Made by a program: the position numbers and the translations under genes. From Anthoceros angustus (lineage: Eukaryota > Plantae > Anthocerotophyta), in NCBI GenBank assembly GCA_010909165.1, contig MU008160.1, positions 1,984,001 to 2,048,000 of the forward strand: a DNA stretch of 64,000 nt, given 5' to 3'. Under the pieces are notes generated by a model. The model had not been told where the DNA came from. It saw only the letters and a list, made by a program, of their open reading frames with translations, and searched no databases. Below, piece after piece: positions 14,199-34,656 of the stretch. Numbering within the stretch: the stretch's first letter is position 1; each line of letters begins with the position of its first letter.

Positions 14199-14662
14199 AT
14201 GTCCACCATGGAAGGGAGCAACCAGCACGCGGCACCGCCTCCCGAGTTCTTGAAAGGGTCTGTTGTTTCGATGTGTTCTCACAAGCCATTCGAGCTCGTG
14301 TGCCTGATCTGAATGAGCTTGCTTGAAAATTTTCAGCTGGCGATGCAAGAGCCGTCAGCACTGGCAACAGGGAGTGATACATTGTGATTTTGGTGACCTG
14401 CAGGGGTTGGGTTTTTTCTGTTGTCGGCACGCTGATCTCCATCCCTGTGGGGATAAGACGCAAGAGCCTGACTCCGCTGGTATTTTTCAGCACGACTGGT
14501 GCTATGCTGGACATCATTCTCAGCACCCAGTATCACGAGTGGGAGAAGAAGGAGCATGCCCGGCTCCAAAAAAGCACTGTTGAACAGAATGGACAGCAGA
14601 TTGCTCTAGGACGTGGGGATGTCATACTAGGAGACAACCAGCAGACCGAAGAGCTCAAGTAG
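14199..14662 (+). pseudogene. Small plant membrane protein of unknown function, apparently with a 1-nt frameshift (or an assembly error)
   Basis: The segment GWVFSVVGTLISIPVGIRRKSLTPLVFFSTTGAMLDII resembles a conserved uncharacterised plant protein (recalled, not verified). The upstream frame WRCKSRQHWQQGVIHCDFGDLQG joins it if one G of the run at 14403-14406 is removed. The exon model is uncertain. Confidence 0.45.
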
Positions 14663-14772
14663 TACATCAAGGATTTCTCTTTGGGAGTCTTTCTCATGGT
14701 TTGCACCAGCAGACCGAAGAGCTCAAGTAGTACATCAAGGATTTCTCTTTGGGAGTCTTTCTCATGGTTTGC
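14637..14772 (+). repeat. Perfect 68-bp tandem duplication (2 units)
   Basis: The unit accagcagaccgaagagctc...ctcatggtttgc starts at 14637 and 14705. Confidence 0.95.
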
Positions 14773-14976
14773 GGTGATGAAACTTGTTGTGCAAGCTAAC
14801 CGGGGACATGATTTCGTGAGAGTCGTGACGAATTGGGATCACTCGTGACAATTGGTATCTACACAAGATTGAAAACTCGTATAGTTTGGACTTGTAAGAT
14901 ATTCCATGTAAACATTGTCACTCCCGTCGTCAGTGATGTCTTCATTTTGCACAATGATAAGTTGTTGCAAGCCTCA

Positions 14977-17462
14977 TCATAGTTTTTCGTTTTTCTTCAC
15001 TTCTGGCGAGGTCCCTACTCTGGTTTCCCCGCCAGGTATCGTTCCCTGAATTATGTCGTTGATTTGTGGTCCTGGACAGCACCACTCTCTGATTTTGCTT
15101 CGGAAAATAAATACCAGGACTATGAACACCAGTGCAGCTGTAAAGCCTACAGCCACTCCTACATAGACAGCAGTCCTGTTGGGTTTCGGGGCTGGGGCTG
15201 GGGCTGGGGCTGGGGCTGGGATCCCTCCACACGAAGAGCAGCAGGCCATGTCACTATATGTATGCTGGAAGTCTGTCCGAGGACAAATTCCAGTGGAGGG
15301 GCCATTGCCACAGGTAGTCGCTGGGTCGGTTGCCTGCAAAACGGAGCTGTTAGGGACAAGGTAAGCAGAAAGGTAAATGTTTGGTTCTTCTGGAGAATCA
15401 ACTTACAGGTAGTGCGCATGATAGACTAGCGCCTGTGGCAGCAGCATTGGTAACCACTACCCCCCCCATCCTCTTCTGTAGAGCATTATCAATCGATCCT
15501 TGCAACGGAAGACTAAGGGACGCCTTTTGGATCAAGATGCCTGCTACTCCAATCAACTCCATGCCATCCCTTGTCATAACTGCAGTGAAGCTGGATGAGA
15601 CCTTCCATCACAATGGATCAAGAGAAAGGAGCCTGCCGTGCCGAATGGGAGTACCTGGGTAGGTGACTTCGATGACGGGCCCCAGTCCGTCGTAGTCGGT
15701 GTATCTCCCTAGCCAATAGGGCTTAGGGAAAACTGCTACATGGGCTCGAGCAAAGAAGGAAAACAGAGATCGGATTCCAAACAGAGGATTTTGCAGGTTG
15801 GCTACTACCTCGTAAGAACCTCCTACCGTGCAGGCAATGTTTGTGAGATTCCCCATGGCTGAAGAGCTTGTCACTCCAACACTGTACATGAGGACTTTCA
15901 CCTGTTGCTTCTCAAGCTCTTGGAGGACGGGATTCAGCTCCTCCACATTGACATAGTCCCCAAAATTTCCATCCGTCAAAACTACCACCACCTGTTGTAG
16001 ATGATCCCGGAATGAGAATTCTACCAGCAAAGAGAGTTTTTGTCAGCGTAAGAAAACTGTCTGGTGGGGGGATCATTACCTTGATTGCATCTCTTGGAGC
16101 TGCATCAAGCAGAGAAAGAGCTGAAGACAACCCAGCAGTATAATTGGCTACTCCTTGGTTGCTGGAAACGTTTAGACTTTCCACGGCCTTCGTCAGATTG
16201 AGCAGTTGCGCACTGCTTGGATCCGGACCTGTGAGTGGAACAGTCAACTGGGGCCACAGACGCAGTGAGAATTTTCCGCAAAGCTATGACCCCAGCCAGC
16301 TCTTAAGTAACCATGAAATGTGAGACCTTGCCTTTGCACCCAACTGGATGGCTGTGTTATTGCCGTCGAAGGTAATCACCGAAGCTTCATCTGTTGCTGA
16401 CAGTGTGTTCAACAGATTCCTAGTAGTGGTTTGGCAGATCTGCAGGAATGACGTTGCGGTGGTGACTGCTCCCAGTCCTCCCATGGAGTAACTGGAGTCC
16501 AATAGTATGACAAGACTCTTCTTTACACCAATACCTCCATTGTACCTGTCCAACGTAAACACATACCCATCTTGCAGATAGCACATAATTCAGGTGCAAC
16601 CGACTGCTCTTAGCAACATATCCAGATTCGCTCCTTACCAGGGCCGTTGTCTCACATCGTAGTGGTTGCAATCTACCAGAGCCTGGGAAGAAAACCATCC
16701 CGAGATGAGCTGCTGCAAGAGGCCAAGGGCGAAAGCGTCTCGCAAGATGTTTCCTAGTATATACTATCTCACCCTGCCAGGATAGAAGCGATGGGGACCT
16801 TCTACGCTGCCCACGGCATGGTTGAAAAACTCAGCACCCGTTCTGCTCGTTGCCAGGGACTTGAAGACAGCGTCATCCAGCGCACGCTGAGAGCAGATGG
16901 CATTCTTCACTTCGGGAGGAACTCCACCTATGCTATCAATGGGTGCCCTGCATTTGTAGGATCAGCATGGATGAATGGTCTGGTGAAGCAGAGACCCCAG
17001 GATACGCAACCTCAAATCTCACCTCACATAACTCCTGTCGTAAGACACCAACCCAGAGTCGCACACAGTGCCATTCCCATCTTGGCAACCTGTGTGGTTC
17101 AAGATTGACGCACACTCCAGCTGTTCTAGGTCCCCTAACACATAATCGCAAGGTCCTCTGGTGCAATTTTCCGGGGAATCACATGTTGCCACCAGCTCTG
17201 CCACATCCCGCAGAACTCCCCAGTCAGCAAGTGAGCTTCTACACATTCTGGTCAACACGTATGCCGAATCTCGCTTACCGCAGGTGTTTTCGTGGTTAAT
17301 TGTAGCCTGTTGCGCTATCAGCTGCACCTGATTCTCCTTCTCATCCAAGAATGCGTCAATGGCAGATGGGCTGGGGGCTGGCCCATCAGCAAACAAGCAA
17401 GCGCAATTTGTGAGCACCAGGTACACCAACATCCACCTTGCTGACCATCCAGCCATAGCCAT
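14977..17462 (-). CDS. Type I membrane protein with signal peptide, VWA_N-like region, VWA (MIDAS) and Cache-like segment; alpha2-delta/CACHD1-like, ~608 aa, 9 exons
   Basis: Exons 17462-17279, 17197-17023, 16947-16773, 16682-16639, 16545-16332, 16247-16080, 15991-15655, 15579-15407, 15333-14977 give an uninterrupted frame. Motifs: GSVEGPHRFYPG, YDVRQRPWY, LVILLDSSYSMG, VLTDG, YWLGRYTDYDGLGPVIEVTYPV, LIGVAG, a (PA)n linker and a TM helix AVYVGVAVGFTAALVFIVLVFIF. Confidence 0.85.
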
Positions 17463-18438
17463 GATCTGAGCTCTTGCGTCCCGATGTCTTCAACGAGAGT
17501 ACGGTCGTGATTGCCCAATCTCAAATCCGATCTATCCATATCCAGTCCGGAGTCGAATTTGACGATGTCAAGGCAAGCTTAGTCTTTGTAACTAACGGCG
17601 GGCTGGACGTGTGATTAAGTATTTTAAACTAAGAGGAGGCGAGTAAAAGGGTGGGCGTAAGGCGTAACGAACTGGTCCTTTCTTGGCAGGTTCAAGCCAA
17701 TTGACTGCGGTCAGCCCCTCTGCTTCATGATGGCCCGGAGCCCCGGCCGGACTGGTCACTCGGCCGCATGAGCTCCTCCTGTCTCAGAGCTCGGAACAGC
17801 ACAGCGATCAATGAGCATGGCAGGCGTTCCTGACGGATGCGTTACACAGCTTGGAGCAAGAAAGATCTGCAGCTGCATCCAACAAGATATGCGCATTCTT
17901 GCAGCCTCTGAAACTCAAGGACTTGAGAGCACTTCGCGATTAAGAGCTGCGCACCTTGTTGATGAATTGATTTTGATCTGTCACTTTCCTGCATGCTGGA
18001 CGAGCCACAGCACGACAACAGGTAGCCAAGGCTTGGTCTGCGCGGGTTTCTTGAAGGTGTGCATGCGGAATTTTGATTACTGGGAACGATTCTTGCAGCT
18101 TTCAGGCATCACAAGCATTTGATTAAAGATTCTCGATGGAACGAGTTCACGGAGTATAGGTTTGAGGAAGTCGAGAGAGGAGTTCTTTGTGGAAGCAAAG
18201 GCCGGGAATTCCGAGCTGTAGGTAACGGTGATATAGATACCAAGTATTGATTGACCTACAACAATGTTCTGGCTCCGGCGAGTGATCCATGGAACAGACT
18301 GGCTTTCAGCGCTCCGGACAGTGTACGAAAACCGTGTGCAACGATCAATCTTTTCCAGGAATTGGTTTTGATCTATCGGGACGGGGTAGGCGGAAGGAAA
18401 GAGGGAAATTGGCGGGCTTGGTGGAGCACGACTAGTCC

Positions 18439-20271
18439 ATGGGGCTGAAGCGTCAAAGCTCTTTCTCGGCGCGCCTTATGCGGATGCTGGTTGTCCCTTC
18501 GATGTTTCTCGTGATCGCAGTTTGTGTTTGGAGTGTCTTGATTATTGCCCCGCTCTCGTTACCGTGCGGGGAATCATGTTATACCTTGTTAGATATGCTT
18601 GCCATCAACCCTGCTCTTCAAGTGGACCCAGATGCTGTGCACATTGCCGGAAATTCTCTGGCGATCGATCTTGAGACAGGTTCTGTCGAGCAGCCTCTGG
18701 ATTCTTGGCCAGTGGGAAACGTGCAGGGCATGCATCACGCCTTCAACCTTGTTGGAGATGTCAATCTCCTGACTTCCTCTTCGTTCGAGGATTCGGAGAA
18801 AGAGAAAGCTTCGTATTTGAGTGGGAGTATGGGATTATTGCGCTCGCAAACATATCGGTCGGCCAGAGCACCAGAGGGAAGACAGAATGGGGAGCAAGGA
18901 AGCAACAGGATGCCTGACGAGGAAAGCATTGTAAGAGATTCAAAGCTTCAGGCACGAAGCACTGGCAGGCCATCGGAAAACGAGGTGCTAGCAGGGGTGA
19001 TGGCCGACATGGAAACGCTCCGAATTTCCGGAGCTCCTCTTACAGTCAAGCAGAATTCCACTGGTTCCGAATCTTGTGATGAGAGATACGTGTATGTCTA
19101 CGATCTGCCGAGTAAGTTCAACGCGGATTTGGTTGCCAATTGCAGCACGATCATGCCCTGGCACAGTCTTTGCGCGTTCTTTTCAAATTCTGGAATGGGC
19201 AAGGTGAGGTATGATCAAGCTTTGGTACCTTCTGGCAGGTGGTTTGAGACTCTACAATACTCTCTGGAGGTTCTGTTTCATGCTAAACTTCTGCACTACA
19301 GGTGCCTGACTTCCGATCCAGCTTCTGCTTCTTTGTTCTACATCCCCTTCTATGCAGGGCTTGATGTCTTGCATTGGAACTTTGCCTCCAACACCACTAC
19401 TCAACAGCGAGATCAACTGTCCCATGATCTGGTCCAGTGGCTGGAGACGCAGACGTGGTGGCATCGGAAAGGTGGGAGAGATCACGTCCTGGTGCTTGGC
19501 AAAATCACCTGGGATTTCAGAAGGGTGGACAACAAAACTACGTCCTGGGGCAGCTGCATGCTCAATCTTCCTCAGATGCAGAACCTAACAAAGCTCTTGA
19601 TTGAACGGGACCCCTGGCATGTGAACGATATCGGAGTGCCTCATCCAACCTATTTCCACCCTTCCTCAGATGACGACATCCGGTTATGGCAGCAGCTTGC
19701 ACTGAACAGTCCCAGAGACAGTTTTGTCAGCTTCGCGGGGATGCCAAGGCCTGGTGACCCCAACAACATCCGTACTCGGCTTATCCAACAGTGTGACGAG
19801 AAGAGGAATGCGAGTCTGTGTCGGGTATTGAAGTGCCACAAGCATCTCTGTCTTAAGCCGGAGGCCACAATGAAGCTCTTTCTGAATTCGCACTTCTGTA
19901 TGCAACCAGGGGGGGACAGTCCCACCAGACGGTCTATCTTTGACTCCCTGATCGCTGGCTGTATTCCAGTCCTTTTTGATCCTTATTCTGCTTATGCTCA
20001 ATATCCGTGGCACCTGCCCAAGGATTCTGATTCTTACTCAGTATATATTCCTCAGGAGGATGTGCGGAAGGGGATCGTGGATGTAGTGTCCATACTCCAA
20101 CAGGTGCCGGAGTCCAAATTGGAACAAATGAGGAAAACCATTCTGCTTGAAATTATGCCTCATCTGCTGTATGCACAGCCGGGTGCAAAGCTTTCGGTAT
20201 TTAACGATGCTTTTGATGTCAGCCTCCAAAACACCATGCACAGGGCTTATACTCGATCTTCAGATATGTAA
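18439..20271 (+). CDS. GT47/exostosin-family glycosyltransferase, xyloglucan galactosyltransferase (MUR3/KATAMARI1/XLT2)-like, 610 aa
   Basis: N-terminal TM anchor, then YVYVYDLPSKFN, ASLFYIPFYAGLD, GRDHVLVLGKITWDFRR, FCMQPGGDSPTRRSIFDSLIAGCIPVLF. Intronless open ORF. Confidence 0.95.
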   Translation: MGLKRQSSFSARLMRMLVVPSMFLVIAVCVWSVLIIAPLSLPCGESCYTLLDMLAINPALQVDPDAVHIAGNSLAIDLETGSVEQPLDSWPVGNVQGMHHAFNLVGDVNLLTSSSFEDSEKEKASYLSGSMGLLRSQTYRSARAPEGRQNGEQGSNRMPDEESIVRDSKLQARSTGRPSENEVLAGVMADMETLRISGAPLTVKQNSTGSESCDERYVYVYDLPSKFNADLVANCSTIMPWHSLCAFFSNSGMGKVRYDQALVPSGRWFETLQYSLEVLFHAKLLHYRCLTSDPASASLFYIPFYAGLDVLHWNFASNTTTQQRDQLSHDLVQWLETQTWWHRKGGRDHVLVLGKITWDFRRVDNKTTSWGSCMLNLPQMQNLTKLLIERDPWHVNDIGVPHPTYFHPSSDDDIRLWQQLALNSPRDSFVSFAGMPRPGDPNNIRTRLIQQCDEKRNASLCRVLKCHKHLCLKPEATMKLFLNSHFCMQPGGDSPTRRSIFDSLIAGCIPVLFDPYSAYAQYPWHLPKDSDSYSVYIPQEDVRKGIVDVVSILQQVPESKLEQMRKTILLEIMPHLLYAQPGAKLSVFNDAFDVSLQNTMHRAYTRSSDM

Positions 20272-22236
20272 ATTATATCCAATATCAGTAGATAATCAAA
20301 GTGTGAGTCTAGTTTCCTATATGGTTGAACCCTATTACCAATTGTTTGTAGGTACCTATTGCAAGAATAGAGACTTGGCACAGTGTTCACACTAACATCA
20401 TAATTTTTATGAACACTCAAATCAAAATCATAATTTTTAAGGAGTTAATAATGTAACAAGAACAGCTCTTTTTCCTATTTATTTTTGCTAGCTTAGGTTG
20501 AGGATAATAAAAGTGGCATTCTATACATAATTATGTACTTGAATATTATAAAAAGATTAAAATATTTAAAAAGTAGGAAAATAAATATTATAAAATAAAT
20601 TAATAAGATCGAATTAGCCAACCAAGTGGATCCTTACCAAGGCAAACACTTACCATATTTTAGGTTGTTATAATTGGTAAAAACTATATAGATTATTTAT
20701 ATATTATTTTTTAACTTTATTTATCAATCTTACATAATTTGTCTCAACATAAATTCAATGATTATTTTAACAAATATCTTATAATATCTAAGTCATATAT
20801 ACCACTGATTAAGTGATGGCTTGACAGGTCCCTATTGGATAAGATCCGTGCTGGAATGATGAAAGCTAGTACTTCATATGTGGCAAAGCACTGGGCATAA
20901 AACCAATAGAGGGGGAGAATTTGGAGTCTGCATTCCGCTGAAAAACATATAATGCAAAGCACAATTACTATTACTCGTGCGATTACATACATGACCTTGG
21001 TGTACAAAAACCATCTCCGGAATTTGAGGCGAAAAAAGGCCGAAAAAGCACGAGAAAAACAATCCAAGGGCTGCAACGCGAAACAGTAGCAACCGAAAAG
21101 CCCGAAAGAGGTGTCCCCGTACAGCGCGCCCCACCCCCTACCCGTAACCCGTTTACGGATTGTTCCTCGCGTGACATACGTCGCGGGTTCGACTCTTGTG
21201 GGCGGAAACGGCCAAGTGGTGGCAGATGTACCAGGGCCCAGGTGGTCGCTTTTGAGAATAGGCTTCTACACCTCCACCCATAATGACGACGTCTTGGTTA
21301 GAGTCAAAGCGCGGCATCCAAGGCGCCGGGGATCGAAACTGACGGCACGTCCTCGTCAGGCAGCCCAGACAGCAATACATGCAGGAGCGGCCTCCCGATT
21401 CCAGGCCCGCCGGGGTTCGAATCCGGCTGTGTCCTCCCGGGTCGGAGGCCTTCATGCTAAATACACCATACAAAAATGCAAGACCTTTCCCCAAGGCGGC
21501 CTAAACATCGTAAAGCAGCCTGGACGGTGGACACCCTGGACATAACAGCACGTGTTGGAGGCAGATGCTCGCCACGAGCCGATCACCTTGGATCGGTGGC
21601 TGCAACAACATACAGGCATACAGATCGATGGCAGTCGGCCGAGATGGGCATGACTTGAGAAGCGGCTTTTTCGCTTCAATGGTCAAGGTTCCTCTGATGC
21701 GAGACAACCAGCCAGAGATTGTTCCAAAACAAGCACTTGGGAGAAAATAGCACATGAGAGAACAGGTGACTGTAAGATAATCACGTCAAAGACTTGCATG
21801 ATGAGCCCATGGATGCAGGGAGATGAGGAAATAGACAAATGTCGGAGAACAAGCGGGGGATCTGAAGATTGGTGAAAAACGAGGGCAGGGAGCCTGGAGA
21901 AAATAGGCCCAGTTTGAGAGCGGAGGTGAACGATATTCGTCCGAACAGATCGGTCTGCATGACATGAAGGCTGTAATGTAAACCATAGTGGAGCAGAAAT
22001 AGAAACAGCACAAACACGAGGTACGTAAAGAATGCCAAATCCGAGGCCCGCTTAGATTATTGTGACCCGGCAGTCCAGGAGCAATCCATGGAACAGACTG
22101 GCATCCCGCGCTCCATGACACCCGTCAGTCCAGACTGTGTAAAAAAACTATGTGCAACGATGGATCTCCGCCAGGAATTGGTTTCACTCTCTCAGAAAGC
22201 TGGAGGTTGGCGGAGGTGCTGGAGGACGGCACTTCC

Positions 22237-24349
22237 ATGGGGCTGAAGCGTCAAAGCTCTTTCTCGGCTCGCCTTGTGCGGATGATGCTTGTCCCTTCAA
22301 TCTTTCTGGTGATCACATTTTCCTTTTGGATAGTGTTGGTTATTGGCCCGCTCTCGTTACCGTGCGAGGAATCATGTTATACCTTGTTAGACATGTTCGC
22401 CACCAATCGTGCTCTTCAAGCGGACAGAGCTGCTGTCCGCATTGTTGGAAATCCTCTGTCGAGAGGTATCCTTGAGACAGGAAACGTGCAGGGGAATGGC
22501 ATGCATCAAGGTCCTGACATTGTTGCACTAGGGGGGAGACGGAATGAGGAGCAAGGAAGCAACAGGACATCTCACGAGGAAGGCGATGCAAGAGATTCAA
22601 AGCTTCAGGCACGGGGCTCTAGCGAGCCATCGGAAGAGGTGGTGCTGGCAGCGGTGATGGCCGATATAGTGGAGAAGCTTCGCGTTTCCGGAGCTCCTCT
22701 TACGACTGTCAAGCGGAATTCCAGAGGTCCCGAGTCTTGTGATGGGAGATACGTGTATGTGTATGATCTGCCGAGCAAGTTCAATGCGGATTTGCTTGGC
22801 AACTGCAGCACGATCTTGTCCTGGTACAATCTCTGCGACTTCTTGTCAAATTCTGGAATGGGGAAAGTGAGGTATGATGAAGCTTTGCTACCTGCTGGGA
22901 GGTGGTTTGAGACTCACCAATACTCTCTGGAGGTTCTGTTTCACGCTAAGCTTCTGCACCACAGGTGCCTCACGTCCGATCCAGAAACGGCTTCCTTGTT
23001 CTACATCCCCTTCTATGCTGGGCTTGATGTTTTGCGTTGGATCTTTGCCTCTAACTCCACTACGCAACAGCTGGATCAACTGTCTCTTGATCTGGTCCAG
23101 TGGCTGGAGACGCAGCCATGGTGGCATCGGAAGGGAGGGAGAGACCACGTCCTTGTGCTTGGCAAAATCACCTGGGATTTCAGAAGGGTGGACAACAAAC
23201 CTAAGCCCTACGGCAGCTCCTTGCTCAACCTTCCTCAGATGCAGAACCTAACAAAGCTCTTGATTGAACGGCAGCCCTGGGATGTGAACGATATCGGAGT
23301 GCCTCATCCAACATTTTTCCACCCTTCCTCAGATGATGACATCAGGTTATGGCAGCAGTATGCACTGAACAGTCCCAGAGGCAGTCTTATCAGCTTCGCG
23401 GGGATGCCTAGGCCAGCTGACCCTAACAGCATCCGTTCTCGGCTTATCCAACAGTGTGAAGGGTGTCAGCCTGTGCCGGGTTTTGAGGTGCCAGAAGCGT
23501 CTCTGCCTTAAGCCTGAGGCCACAATGAAGCTCCTTCTGAGCTCTCACTTCTGTATGCAACCAGGGGGAGACAGTCCCACCAGACGGTCCATCTTTGACT
23601 CTCTGATCGCTGGCTGTATTCCAGTCCTTTTTGATCCCCATTCTGCTTATGCTCAATGTCCGTGGCACCTGCCGAAGGATTCTGATTCTTACTCAGTATA
23701 TATTCCTCAGGAGGATGTGCGGGAGGGAATCGTGAATGTAGTGTCCAGACTCCAGCAGTCCAAATTGGAACAAATGAGGAAAACCATTTTGTTTGAAATT
23801 TTGCCTCACCTGCTGTATACGGTACACAGCCTGGTGCGAAGCTTTCTGTATTTAAGGATGCTTTTGATGTCAGTCTCCAAAGCATGATCAATAGCAGGGT
23901 GTCATTTTGACCCCGTCCCAAGCTCGGTCCCGGTCCCGGCATGTGTTAAAAAAAACATGGGACCGGAGGCTCTTCAGGAGTCCGGTCCCCACCCTCGGTC
24001 CCCTATTACCCTCGGGGACCGAGGGTTCATAAAAGGTCCGGTTTAAAATTAGTAAATTACTTAATTTTATATCCAAAAAATTATATTTATTATGGACACA
24101 TAGACATCTTATCATGGACGCAGTTTACAGTCTGCCGGCTAGGCAGTCTGCAGTCTTTTATATTATTATTTATAAATTATTTATTTAATATATATTATAT
24201 TTAGTGACCAAGGGTCGCAAAAAGGCACGGTCCCTGCTTGGTCCGGGACCGAGCGTAGCCAGGCTAGGCGGTCCCGGGGACTGAGCTAGTACTCGGTCAA
24301 AATGACACCTTGATCAATAGGGCTTCTACTCGGTCCTCAAATTTGTAAA
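22237..24349 (+). pseudogene. Tandem paralog of the GT47 gene, frameshifted near the 3' end and interrupted by a hAT MITE
   Basis: Colinear with 18439-20271 from MGLKRQSSFSARL. Frameshifting deletion near 23455, further indels near 23760-23820, and the final codons are split by the insertion at 23895-24312. Confidence 0.88.
23895..24312. mobile_element. Non-autonomous hAT-type MITE, 418 bp
   Basis: 18-bp TIRs cagggtgtcattttgacc / ggtcaaaatgacaccttg (1 mismatch), 8-bp TSD atcaatag (23887-23894 and 24313-24320), subterminal GGTCCC/GGGACC repeats and an AT-rich core. Confidence 0.92.
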
Positions 24350-32000: not shown

Positions 32001-34656
32001 TAGGGTATGGGGAGTATAGGAAGGCTGGCGTCCAAGGCGGCGGACTATCCGAGTACCATCTTGGCTCGTGTGCTCTTGCCTTTCGGCTCGAGGAGGCGGA
32101 GTGAGTTCTGCGTCACCGTGATTAATTGGTGGTAGAGGATGTGTTTAGAGCTCGTGACGAGCTCCGCCAACACGCTTGATGGGTGCGAGGCCGGTCGGGG
32201 CACAGGCTCGGGAGGCGCTTGGGGGCGACTGCAGGCGGAAGCCATCCTTGGAGGCTTGGAGCAGAGGTGGGGATGCAGTGCGAAGCCACTTCTCCATGAG
32301 CGTGGGCCGGGGAAGGGCAAAAGGCTGGTGTGAATACATCGGCGTGTTGGTGTTGTGACTACTAAATGGGAATGGATAAGGGAGAAGGGTCACAGGCGTG
32401 TGTGTGTTGAGGTGGAGTTGTGGTGGACAGAGTTCGGGAGGCTGGGCGCTAAATCGTGGTGACGAAGCGTCGTTAAACTGTTCGGTGGTCTTGGAGCGGA
32501 GAGGCGGGGTTGTGGGAAGGTCCGTGGTACATCTTTGGACGAGTTGTGGAGGGCACACACTTAGGGTTGTGGAGCCGGACCCAACTGATGAAGTCCGCTC
32601 AGGCGATAGTGTGAGCTCGAGCGAGAATAAGCACGAGACCATTCCCTTGAGGAGCGGACCCTTCCTAGCGACACGGGATTGTGCGGCGGCAGTCAAGTCG
32701 CGCCACACTCCCGCACCCCATATTCCACCCCTCCCTCCACCTGCTGTCGTTACTCCTCCGACGACACCACCTGCAGGGTCCACCCCACCTCGGGCGTCCC
32801 CCTCCACTAGTACTCCGGGATTTCCCTCATCCACCCCCTCGCCCTATATTGTGTTATCTTCTCCTCAGATGGCTCGGCGTCCAATTCCTGGCAGACCTAT
32901 GCAGCTATTGGGGGGAGAAGGATCGATTTAGATTGCCTGACTCTGAAGAAGTGTTACTAACCTTTGCACTGCGGGCTACATGGTCCACGATTACGACGTT
33001 CGACAAGAACAAATAAAGGAGTACCAGGTACACGTTTTGATGACCTAGAGTACTCCAAAGGACTTGTAGCTAATTCCGTCTCTATGATCAGTGACCCTCG
33101 TGCCGTGCGAGAAGCACTTAATGGTGACGAAGGCACTGAGTGGTGAGCTTCCATGGATCGAGAGTTCAACTCTCTCATTGCTAATGAAACTTGGACCCTC
33201 GTAGACCCTCCTCCCGGTAGAAGCATTGTGACCAGTAAATGGGTACTAAGGAAGAAGTATAATGCTGATGGGAGTCTTTCCAAGTACAAAGCTAGACTCG
33301 TTGCACGGGGTTTTACTCAAAAGGATGGCTTAGATTATCAAAAGGAAAGCACTTTCAGTCCAGTGGTCAAGCTTACCTCCTTGCGGGCCATGCTTGCTTT
33401 ATCTGCCATGCACAACTTGCATGTACATCAAATGGATGTGCAAACAGCTTTTCTGAACGGTGTTCTTCGAGAGGAAATTTATTTATAACAACCGGAGGGC
33501 TATGTTAAACCTGAGGAAGCCCACAAAGTATATAAACTCCACAAGACCCTATACAGTTTAAAGTAGTCACCTCGTGGCTGGTACGAAAGATTTCAACTCC
33601 ATTTGCTTAGTAAGGGCTTCGTCAAATCCCATGCAGATTCAAGTGTCTTCATAAGAAGACAAGGTAATTTTCACCTTATCTTGGGTCTCTACGTTGATGA
33701 CCTTGTTCTTTGTTGCAACGATCTTAGTTTTCTTAACTTGATCAAAAGCGAACTCAGCAAGGAGTTTCTGATAACTGACAATGGCGTCCTCAAATTCCTC
33801 CTCGGCGTACAGGTTATCATTAACACCAATAGCATCAGTCTTCATCAAGAAAGATATGTAATAGACATGCTAGATAAGTATCAGATGCAGCATTGCAAAC
33901 CTGTCGACACTCCCATGCAAACTGGTGAGAGATTACGTTCCTCTATGTCTCCAAGCACTCCTGCAGAAATAGAAGAAATGAAGGATATACCCTATAAAGG
34001 TGTTGTGGGCAGTATACAACACTTGGTTCAGAATACACGACTTGATGTTGCCTGTGCTTGTAATCACACTGCTCAATTTCAAACTTCACCTGGGAAGCCA
34101 CATTGGGTGGCTGTGAAACGAATTCTTCGATATCTTCAGAAGACGAAAACTACAGGCATCACTTATACTGGTGGTGAGGGTGCCCAACACAAGCTTCTAG
34201 GATGGACAGACTCAGATTGGGCCGGTGATCCGGACACCAGAAAGTCCACATCAGGCTATGTTTTCACTCTCGCTGGAGGTGCTGTTAGTTGGAAGTGTAA
34301 AAAGCAAGCTTGTGTTGCTCAAAGCTCAGCAGAATCCGAGTATATTGCTGCACGGCCGCCGCCGTTTGGCTTGTTCAACTCCTACAAGATCTGCGTATCC
34401 TCATTCCAGCCTGTTGAAATTAAGTGTGACAATCAAGTCGCTATCTCTCTTTCTCGAGATCACGATTTCACGATCGCCTAAGCACATCCAATTGCGGTAT
34501 CATTACTTACGAGAGAAGGTGGAATCTCAAGAGCTATTTCTCACTTATGTCCCGACGTCGTACCAAGCGGATATCCTTACCAAACCGTGTCGCTACTCGA
34601 GCACCGCTGCGAGCATCGGGCTTATCCTCTATATCTTGAGTGCGCTCACCTCCTAG
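29040..34656 (+). pseudogene. Copia gag-pol, frameshifted and interrupted at 31331-32707
   Basis: ORF fragments 29040, 29328, 30041, 30582, 31100, 33153, 33603 and 34225 carry gag, GAG-pre-integrase (LWHLRLSH), rve, RT and RNase H motifs. Confidence 0.9.
31331..32707 (+). mobile_element. Gypsy-type solo LTR (1377 bp) inserted in the Copia element
   Basis: Starts TGTGGAG, ends CGCCACA, flanked by 5-bp TSD CTCCC (31326-31330 and 32708-32712). Contains an array of ~14-28-bp ggtccgtccgggcgaggtcc units (~31478-31870). Confidence 0.92.

Follow-up and report, generated by a model that had tools for sequence, protein, structure and literature searches.

Gene structure, transcription, and domains of the protein

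We analyzed a stretch of 64,000 nucleotides from the hornwort Anthoceros angustus (contig MU008160.1, positions 1,984,001–2,048,000; hereafter the window) and focused on a minus-strand gene that encodes a predicted membrane protein with a Cache-VWA head. Translation of the spliced model (17462..14977, nine exons) gave 608 amino acids with a single terminal stop. A sequence-only reading of the locus had proposed a nine-exon gene of about 608 residues, and the splice joints and the translation agreed with it exactly. The gene is laid out as follows.

14977..17462, minus strand: coding region, defined by splice joints in same-species transcript contigs, translation, and an end-to-end family-profile match
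17462–17279, 17197–17023, 16947–16773, 16682–16639, and 16545–16332, minus strand: exons 1–5
16247–16080, 15991–15655, 15579–15407, and 15333–14977, minus strand: exons 6–9, with the stop codon at 14979–14977
17278–17198 (81 nt), 17022–16948 (75 nt), 16772–16683 (90 nt), and 16638–16546 (93 nt), minus strand: introns 1–4
16331–16248 (84 nt, GC-AG), 16079–15992 (88 nt), 15654–15580 (75 nt), and 15406–15334 (73 nt), minus strand: introns 5–8

All eight introns were removed in contigs of the same-species sequencing run X1, whose type is only guessed to be RNA and which aligned to window positions 14900–17560 with zero mismatches. The removed stretches read CT..AC on the plus strand, corresponding to GT..AG on the gene strand, and one read CT..GC, corresponding to GC-AG. 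Because intron-free contigs must stem from spliced RNA, the gene is transcribed and processed. Transcript data had been proposed as a check of the splice model, and this check yielded eight clean joints, all of them removing introns. In two runs from a related species (X2 and X3, 90–95% identity), four of the eight joints were identical to those of X1. The exon indels in these runs sum to 3 nt relative to the A. angustus gene, and therefore the reading frame is preserved in the related species too. In addition, an unspliced transcript contig passes through the stop codon. These results indicate that the Cache-VWA gene is intact, transcribed, and spliced.

A model of eight exons and 636 amino acids, built from the sequence only, was rejected. 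It was wrong at three places, which the transcript contigs mended: the in-frame intron 1 was missed, a wrong acceptor was used at the 44-nt exon 4, and the GC-AG intron was missed. The match to the Riccia protein P0019 had an E-value of 9e-74 with this model and of 2.9e-85 with the nine-exon model.

Two introns deserve separate mention. Intron 1 (17198–17278) is 81 nt long, in frame, and stop-free, and its retention would add 27 residues inside the Cys-rich N-terminal region; retention was not observed, and the contigs carry the spliced form only. The GC-AG intron (16248–16331) has a typical AG/GCAAGG donor and is backed by a same-species transcript contig; at this region the related species carries ∼40 other letters instead.

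The encoded protein is organized as one Cache module split by a VWA domain, followed by a Cys-rich stalk, a (PA)n linker, one transmembrane (TM) helix, and a 40-residue tail. Its features are listed below.

17388..17462, minus strand: probable signal peptide, residues 1–25, from the hydrophobic N terminus read in the sequence; relatives begin alike
17061..17366, minus strand: long N-terminal helix (residues 33–60) and Cys-rich N region (residues 61–107), across intron 1
16542..17024, minus strand: N-terminal Cache half (VWA_N-like), residues 120–194, from profile alignment to alpha2-delta-1 residues 161–250 and to bacterial dCache_1 sensors (PctA)
15761..16526, minus strand: VWA domain, residues 200–397, with weak Pfam VWA/VWA_2 matches on exon pieces and clear ones on relatives
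15521..15730, minus strand: C-terminal Cache half, residues 408–452, from the family alignment and the alignment of alpha2-delta-1 D493
15187..15418, minus strand: Cys-rich juxtamembrane stalk (residues 487–525) and (PA)n linker (residues 527–539), from the translation and the conserved C...C...CC..C columns
14980..15168, minus strand: single TM helix (residues 546–568) and 40-residue cytosolic tail (residues 569–608) with a CC pair and no kinase, from a hydropathy scan

Every motif that the sequence-only reading had listed was located in the translation, from the signal peptide and the Cys-rich regions to the PAPAPA linker, the TM helix, and the tail. YDVRQRPWY occupies residues 186–194 (16661–16639 plus 16545–16542), immediately before the VWA domain, and the GSVEG..RFYPG motif is also present. 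Within the VWA domain lie DSSYS (residues 209–213) and the TDG motif (LTDG, residues 324–327). W..Y.D..GLGPVIEVTYPV falls at residues 413–431 and LIGVAG at residues 441–446, so that the second Cache half reads PYWLGRYTDYDGLGPVIEVTYPV ... LIGVAGILI; helices follow at residues 453–475.

Nine cysteines at residues 61–183 are conserved across the family. The Cys-rich N region has conserved Cys columns in the family alignment, with a matching helix in the predicted structure of the Selaginella relative P0013 (described below). The ∼90 residues between the last Cache strand and the TM helix are Cys-rich and of low confidence in that model, and a 6-nt tandem repeat lies at 15188–15220, within the linker and stalk feature. 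In the hydropathy scan, residues 546–568 were the sole strongly hydrophobic 19-mer stretch besides the N terminus and were taken as the TM helix. The protein contains nine N-x-S/T sequons. A tblastn search with three kinase domains revealed no kinase similarity in the 64-kb window, and no paralog of the gene was found there. These features predict a protein of the secretory pathway that crosses the membrane once, bears a Cache-VWA head, and has no enzymatic tail.

Relatives in land plants and homology to the alpha2-delta head

An exhaustive HMMER search with the largest exon identified 41 proteins at E-values up to 0.001. All named relatives are land plants other than angiosperms, and the remaining matches are unnamed contigs. 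The named species are the liverworts Marchantia paleacea, M. polymorpha, Riccia fluitans, and R. sorocarpa; the mosses Sphagnum fallax, S. jensenii, and Physcomitrium patens; and the vascular plants Selaginella moellendorffii, Psilotum nudum, and Ginkgo biloba. A family profile built from 28 relatives, with the rows of the window excluded, gave a single match over residues 18–586 of the hornwort protein (476.8 bits). Given this end-to-end match and the alignment to Riccia P0019 (34% identity over 541 amino acids, at the E-value of 2.9e-85 given above), the gene is far beyond chance.

Two architectures occur among the relatives. In one, which the hornwort gene shares, a TM helix and a short tail come after the ectodomain (585–765 amino acids); in the other, found in Riccia, M. 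paleacea, and Physcomitrium, it is joined to a Ser/Thr kinase (910–975 amino acids). The proposed domain check with VWA_N, VWA, and dCache_1 profiles was borne out on the relatives, in which Pfam recognized VWA clearly, VWA_N, dCache_1, and MCP-like_PDC_1 weakly around it, and Pkinase in some. On single exon pieces of the hornwort gene, Pfam returned only sub-threshold VWA matches.

We placed the protein in an ectodomain tree (20 rows, 582 columns, IQ-TREE with LG+C20, midpoint root, no outgroup; several short fragments were excluded). The hornwort protein was the sister of the liverwort kinase-fused clade, with support of 94/95. The Physcomitrium kinase form was placed elsewhere, apart from the liverwort kinase clade, which implies more than one gain or loss of the kinase. 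The hornwort protein corresponds to the bryophyte VWA receptor kinases as their receptor-like-protein form without a kinase.

The two Physcomitrium patens records P0052 and P0053 (XP_024368104 and XP_024368103) carry the NCBI name "receptor-like protein kinase THESEUS 1." This label probably derives from the kinase domain alone; the moss Cache-VWA ectodomain is unrelated to the malectin-like ectodomain of THESEUS1.

The relation to animal alpha2-delta became visible only with the family profile A1, an alignment of land-plant relatives with the window's exons among its rows; it was seen neither with exon pieces in Pfam nor with one exon in phmmer, which found nothing in the PDB. Against the PDB, A1 matched alpha2-delta-1 chains at an E-value of 2.5e-36, with profile positions 96–437 corresponding to residues 161–502, a stretch that takes in VWA_N, VWA, and the initial post-VWA strands. 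Beyond about residue 502, alpha2-delta-1 had no match to the profile. The motifs of alpha2-delta-1 that the sequence-only reading had cited, YDVRRRPWY before the VWA and a 21-letter segment after it, were seen in the A1 alignment. The next matches just before the VWA were to bacterial dCache_1 proteins, namely a diguanylate cyclase sensor (E 1.9e-5), PctA, and PctB, and those just after it were to a histidine kinase and Tlp3, also dCache_1 sensors. These sensors align at profile positions 137–185 and 379–451, respectively, and their matching on both sides of the VWA constitutes a split-Cache pattern.

A structure was predicted with AlphaFold2 for Selaginella P0013, using A1 as the alignment (mean predicted local distance difference test score, pLDDT, 72.6; predicted template modeling score, pTM, 0.73); core residues 120–470 were mostly above 80 pLDDT. 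The 12 best Foldseek matches of this model were alpha2-delta-1 (best E 2.8e-20), followed by CACHD1 (E 1.5e-12), with ordinary VWA proteins from about E 4e-07. VIA-align superposed the model on alpha2-delta-1 with Z 29.1 over 401 residues at 4.3 Å and on CACHD1 with Z 24.4 over 388 residues, the latter covering CACHD1 residues 92–614 only; plain VWA domains reached about Z 20 over 175 residues. The nearest clusters in the ESM Atlas were diatom and haptophyte VWA proteins (∼700–810 amino acids), CACHD1, and alpha2-delta. A single PAS-like sheet is seen in the model, two of its strands preceding the VWA and three following it; a second Cache module is not visible. Together, the profile matches and the model show a VWA that interrupts a single Cache module and is flanked by Cache strands.

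The earlier claim of true homology to the VWA_N-VWA-Cache head of alpha2-delta and CACHD1 is upheld by the profile match and by both superpositions, as is that of a membrane-anchored protein (one TM helix) of about half their size. The proposed superposition did find the alpha2-delta-1 fold, but on the Selaginella model and not on the hornwort protein. Pfam matched neither VGCC_alpha2 or a second dCache_1 nor the CACHD1-type pair of dCache_1 domains with CACHD1_C in the exon pieces or the relatives, and only the first third of alpha2-delta was matched.

Much of this architecture is already on record. Moran and Zakon (2014) found alpha2-delta in animals only and reported that Cav alpha1 was lost in all land plants (PMC4202318); the presumed absence of a Cav alpha1 gene from the A. 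angustus genome is taken from that literature. According to Gumerov et al. (2022, PNAS; PMC8915833), VWA_N and the post-VWA segment are the two halves of one dCache_1, and a single dCache_1 with a VWA insertion occurs in diverse eukaryotes including Archaeplastida, with none in angiosperms or fungi. The same study describes a single-Cache-VWA module fused to a Ser/Thr kinase in some Streptophyta, places the VWA insertion near the last ancestor shared by eukaryotes (LECA), and treats alpha2-delta as a cluster restricted to Metazoa. A bryophyte-only "VWA" receptor-kinase family is listed in metaRLK 2.0 (PMC13174206). The hornwort protein conforms to the single-dCache_1 arrangement, having one dCache_1 region in its 608 residues and no enclosing second one.

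The sequence-only reading had proposed an orphan accessory subunit that was later repurposed. This proposal is not supported, because on the account of Gumerov et al. the architecture dates from near LECA and alpha2-delta is a metazoan offshoot, not its source (PMC8915833); the plant relatives, moreover, are receptor kinases or kinase-less receptor-like proteins. The same reading knew of no functional description. We likewise found no characterized ortholog of the hornwort protein, but the family architecture itself had been reported (PMC8915833). Since the family is present in these two sources (PMC8915833 and PMC13174206), the hornwort gene is a new member of a described but uncharacterized family and not an orphaned Cav subunit.

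Pocket and metal-site residues and candidate functions

In the published amino-acid motif, YxxxxRxW contacts the ligand carboxylate and Y-x(27–34)-D contacts the amino group; in alpha2-delta-1 the motif comprises Y238, R243, W245, Y452, and D493, of which D493 binds gabapentin or leucine through a salt bridge (bioRxiv 10.1101/2022.12.05.519047). In the family alignment, the hornwort protein has the carboxylate half, YxxxxRxW(Y), as Y186, R191, W193, and Y194, and the carboxylate triad of the pocket is strictly conserved across the family. Y417 (15703–15701) is kept as well. The position of the amino-group Asp is occupied by L448 (15535–15533), the hornwort protein reading GVAGILI versus GVAGIDI in the family and GVMGVDV in alpha2-delta-1. 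No Asp or Glu occurs at residues 444–451, and Y-x(27–34)-D is accordingly absent. Most relatives have Asp at this position, Sphagnum has Thr, and two Riccia paralogs have Asn or Glu. The closest relative, the transcribed Logan sequence P0047, has Val; the lack of Asp in this second transcribed sequence points to a stable derived state.

At the metal ion-dependent adhesion site (MIDAS) of the VWA domain, D209, S211, and S213 (16499–16485) and D327 (15973–15971) are present. Among the aligned relatives, only Selaginella shares a perfect DxSxS with the hornwort protein. The canonical Thr/Ser (T333 in alpha2-delta-1) is replaced by A298 (16148–16146), a position that is Ser in most relatives, and the complete set of DxSxS, T, and D is therefore not found. 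Of the MIDAS candidates named by the sequence-only reading, the DSSYS and TDG residues do lie at the site, but its Thr (T301) is off the canonical position. T301 belongs to a conserved N-x-T glycosylation sequon, N-Y-T in the hornwort protein, and is itself altered in the related hornwort species. Together, L448 and A298 make canonical amino-acid sensing by the hornwort copy unlikely.

The retained and altered metal-site residues bear on whether the protein may be an alpha2-delta-like auxiliary or trafficking subunit, whose VWA metal site would clamp an acidic extracellular loop of a channel and raise its abundance at the cell surface. Candidates would be a plant Ca2+-permeable channel of a non-Cav type or a four-domain channel that has escaped detection. 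True homology and a common fold with the alpha2-delta-1 head, including the MIDAS-bearing part, speak for such a role, as does retention of DxSxS and of the TDG Asp. However, we regard it as improbable: Ala298 stands at the canonical MIDAS Thr/Ser position, the protein has neither the second dCache_1 nor the delta part of alpha2-delta, the nearest relatives are receptor kinases and not channel partners, all land plants are reported to have lost Cav alpha1 (PMC4202318), and the architecture is, by the account of Gumerov et al., older than alpha2-delta (PMC8915833).

Several elements surround the gene in the window. Just downstream, in the convergent 3′ region, lies a perfect 68-bp tandem duplication (14637–14772; 2.0 copies, 100% identical), which contains the stop codon of a plus-strand open reading frame (ORF) ending at 14662 and into which a Cache-VWA transcript contig appears to extend. 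On the other side, two long plus-strand ORFs, 18439–20271 and 22150–23511, have strong Exostosin/GT47 domains (E 4e-80 and 9e-52); the first begins about 1 kb from the Cache-VWA start codon, in opposite orientation. A further plus-strand ORF at 33603–34481 matches copia-type reverse transcriptase (RVT_2, E 3e-20) and is probably a retrotransposon remnant.

A role in metal-dependent adhesion, in which the VWA ties the plasma membrane to a cell-wall or matrix component in the manner of integrin I domains and the Cache pocket is vestigial, would draw on the extracellular VWA with its DxSxS and Asp, the Cys-rich, glycosylated stalk and the 9 N-x-S/T sequons, and the loss of the Cache Asp. The neighboring GT47 wall glycosyltransferases would suit it too, though linkage means little in eukaryotes. 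The incomplete MIDAS (A298) speaks against adhesion, the strict conservation of the carboxylate triad across the family argues that the pocket is used, and the kinase fusions indicate signaling rather than anchoring. We therefore consider this role unlikely.

Comparison with the related species gave 21 non-synonymous and 9 synonymous changes among 30 exonic differences, a count drawn from 40 of 114 differences in all that is a rough sign of fast ectodomain evolution, not a measured rate; it could mean relaxed constraint instead of a working sensor. The gene may be a decaying or neofunctionalizing copy that has lost the kinase and key ligand contacts; selection on it would be relaxed or diversifying, and it might serve as a decoy or have no sensing role left. 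L448 in place of the conserved Asp, A298 in place of the MIDAS Ser/Thr, and the altered T301 in the related species would fit. This reading is nonetheless doubtful, since neither the reading frame nor any of the eight splice sites is disrupted, transcription and correct splicing occur in two species with exon indels of the second summing to 3 nt, the nearest Logan relative is transcribed in what seems a stable derived state, and the substitution count rests on only part of the differences.

We favor, with moderate confidence, the explanation that the gene encodes an expressed type I membrane glycoprotein of an ancient eukaryotic VWA-split-Cache family, acting through a partner as a ligand-binding surface receptor or co-receptor; a kinase-less surface receptor or co-receptor is the most likely role. 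The protein would reside in the plasma membrane with its Cache-VWA head outside. Its ligand there would be a small molecule bound by the Cache pocket, or else a protein that docks at the VWA metal site. By analogy with plant receptor-like proteins, the signal might be relayed through a partner such as a receptor kinase. Retention of the carboxylate clamp together with loss of the amine contact argues for another ligand or a mainly protein-binding role; a carboxylate without an amine would fit better, or else a co-receptor role driven by protein contacts.

Several points weigh against this explanation. The pocket Asp and the MIDAS Thr/Ser are both replaced, and non-synonymous differences prevail in the count given above. 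The structural evidence comes from P0013, a relative that is 31% identical, and not from the hornwort protein. The tree lacks an outgroup, and the 94/95 support of its key node is just below the threshold for strong support. No experimental study of any plant family member was found in the literature, and the plasma-membrane location and the signaling partner are assumptions.

The named family records are confined to land plants with swimming sperm: the hornwort, liverworts, mosses, Selaginella, Psilotum, and Ginkgo. This distribution suggests a further reading, which we hold to have little chance of being right, that Cache-VWA proteins are surface chemosensors or alpha2-delta-like Ca2+-channel partners in sperm guidance or fertilization, the hornwort form being a co-receptor for a non-amino-acid ligand.

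Extant, transcribed relatives of the drug-binding head of animal alpha2-delta occur in early-diverging land plants, where they seem to be built into receptors rather than channel subunits. Since Anthoceros, Marchantia, and Physcomitrium can each be transformed, the family offers a direct route to what the ancestral Cache-VWA module senses. It also permits a test of how single pocket-residue losses retune the module, for which the hornwort copy, with its pocket Asp changed to Leu and its metal-site Ser/Thr changed to Ala, is a natural variant.

Comparison with known systems

In animal alpha2-delta (CACNA2D1–4), the N-terminal helices, VWA_N, VWA, and initial Cache strands (about residues 161–502 of alpha2-delta-1) are homologous to those of the hornwort protein; YDVR(R/Q)RPWY is near-identical, and the hornwort DxSxS is as in alpha2-delta-1 and -2. 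In contrast to alpha2-delta, the hornwort protein is about half the size (versus about 1,100 amino acids) and has neither the second dCache_1 (VGCC_alpha2) nor the delta part; it has a TM helix and a cytosolic tail instead of a cleaved, glycosylphosphatidylinositol (GPI)-anchored delta. The equivalents of the gabapentin/leucine-binding Asp493 and of the MIDAS Thr333 are Leu and Ala, respectively. Alpha2-delta acts with Cav, whereas land plants have no known Cav partner.

Like the hornwort protein, CACHD1 spans the membrane in type I orientation and combines a VWA-Cache head with a TM helix, a cytosolic tail, and an imperfect MIDAS; it is a co-receptor, not an enzyme. It differs in its size of about 1,270 amino acids, its two dCache_1 domains, and its CACHD1_C domain; the amino-acid motif of CACHD1 is found in the second dCache_1, a domain absent from the hornwort protein. 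In the superposition with the P0013 model, identity to CACHD1 was only 14%. Compared with dCache_1AA sensors, the hornwort protein has the carboxylate half of the motif but not the amino half and is thus not a strict dCache_1AA sensor.

The single-dCache_1-VWA proteins described in the main text of Gumerov et al. (PMC8915833), which does not name hornwort members, share the architecture of one VWA-interrupted extracellular Cache module followed by a TM helix, with YxxxxRxWY before the VWA and a Y-containing strand after it. Their range, which includes Archaeplastida and not angiosperms, fits the relatives found here in liverworts, mosses, Selaginella, Psilotum, and Ginkgo. Finally, the ectodomains of the bryophyte VWA receptor-like kinases (Riccia P0019 and P0042, Marchantia paleacea P0043, and Physcomitrium P0052) are 33–37% identical to that of the hornwort protein over about 420–540 residues and share its Cys pattern, stalk, and single TM helix. 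The liverwort and moss kinases keep the pocket Asp (GVAGIDI or GVAGVDV), unlike the hornwort protein, which ends in a 40-residue tail and a stop codon where they continue into the kinase.

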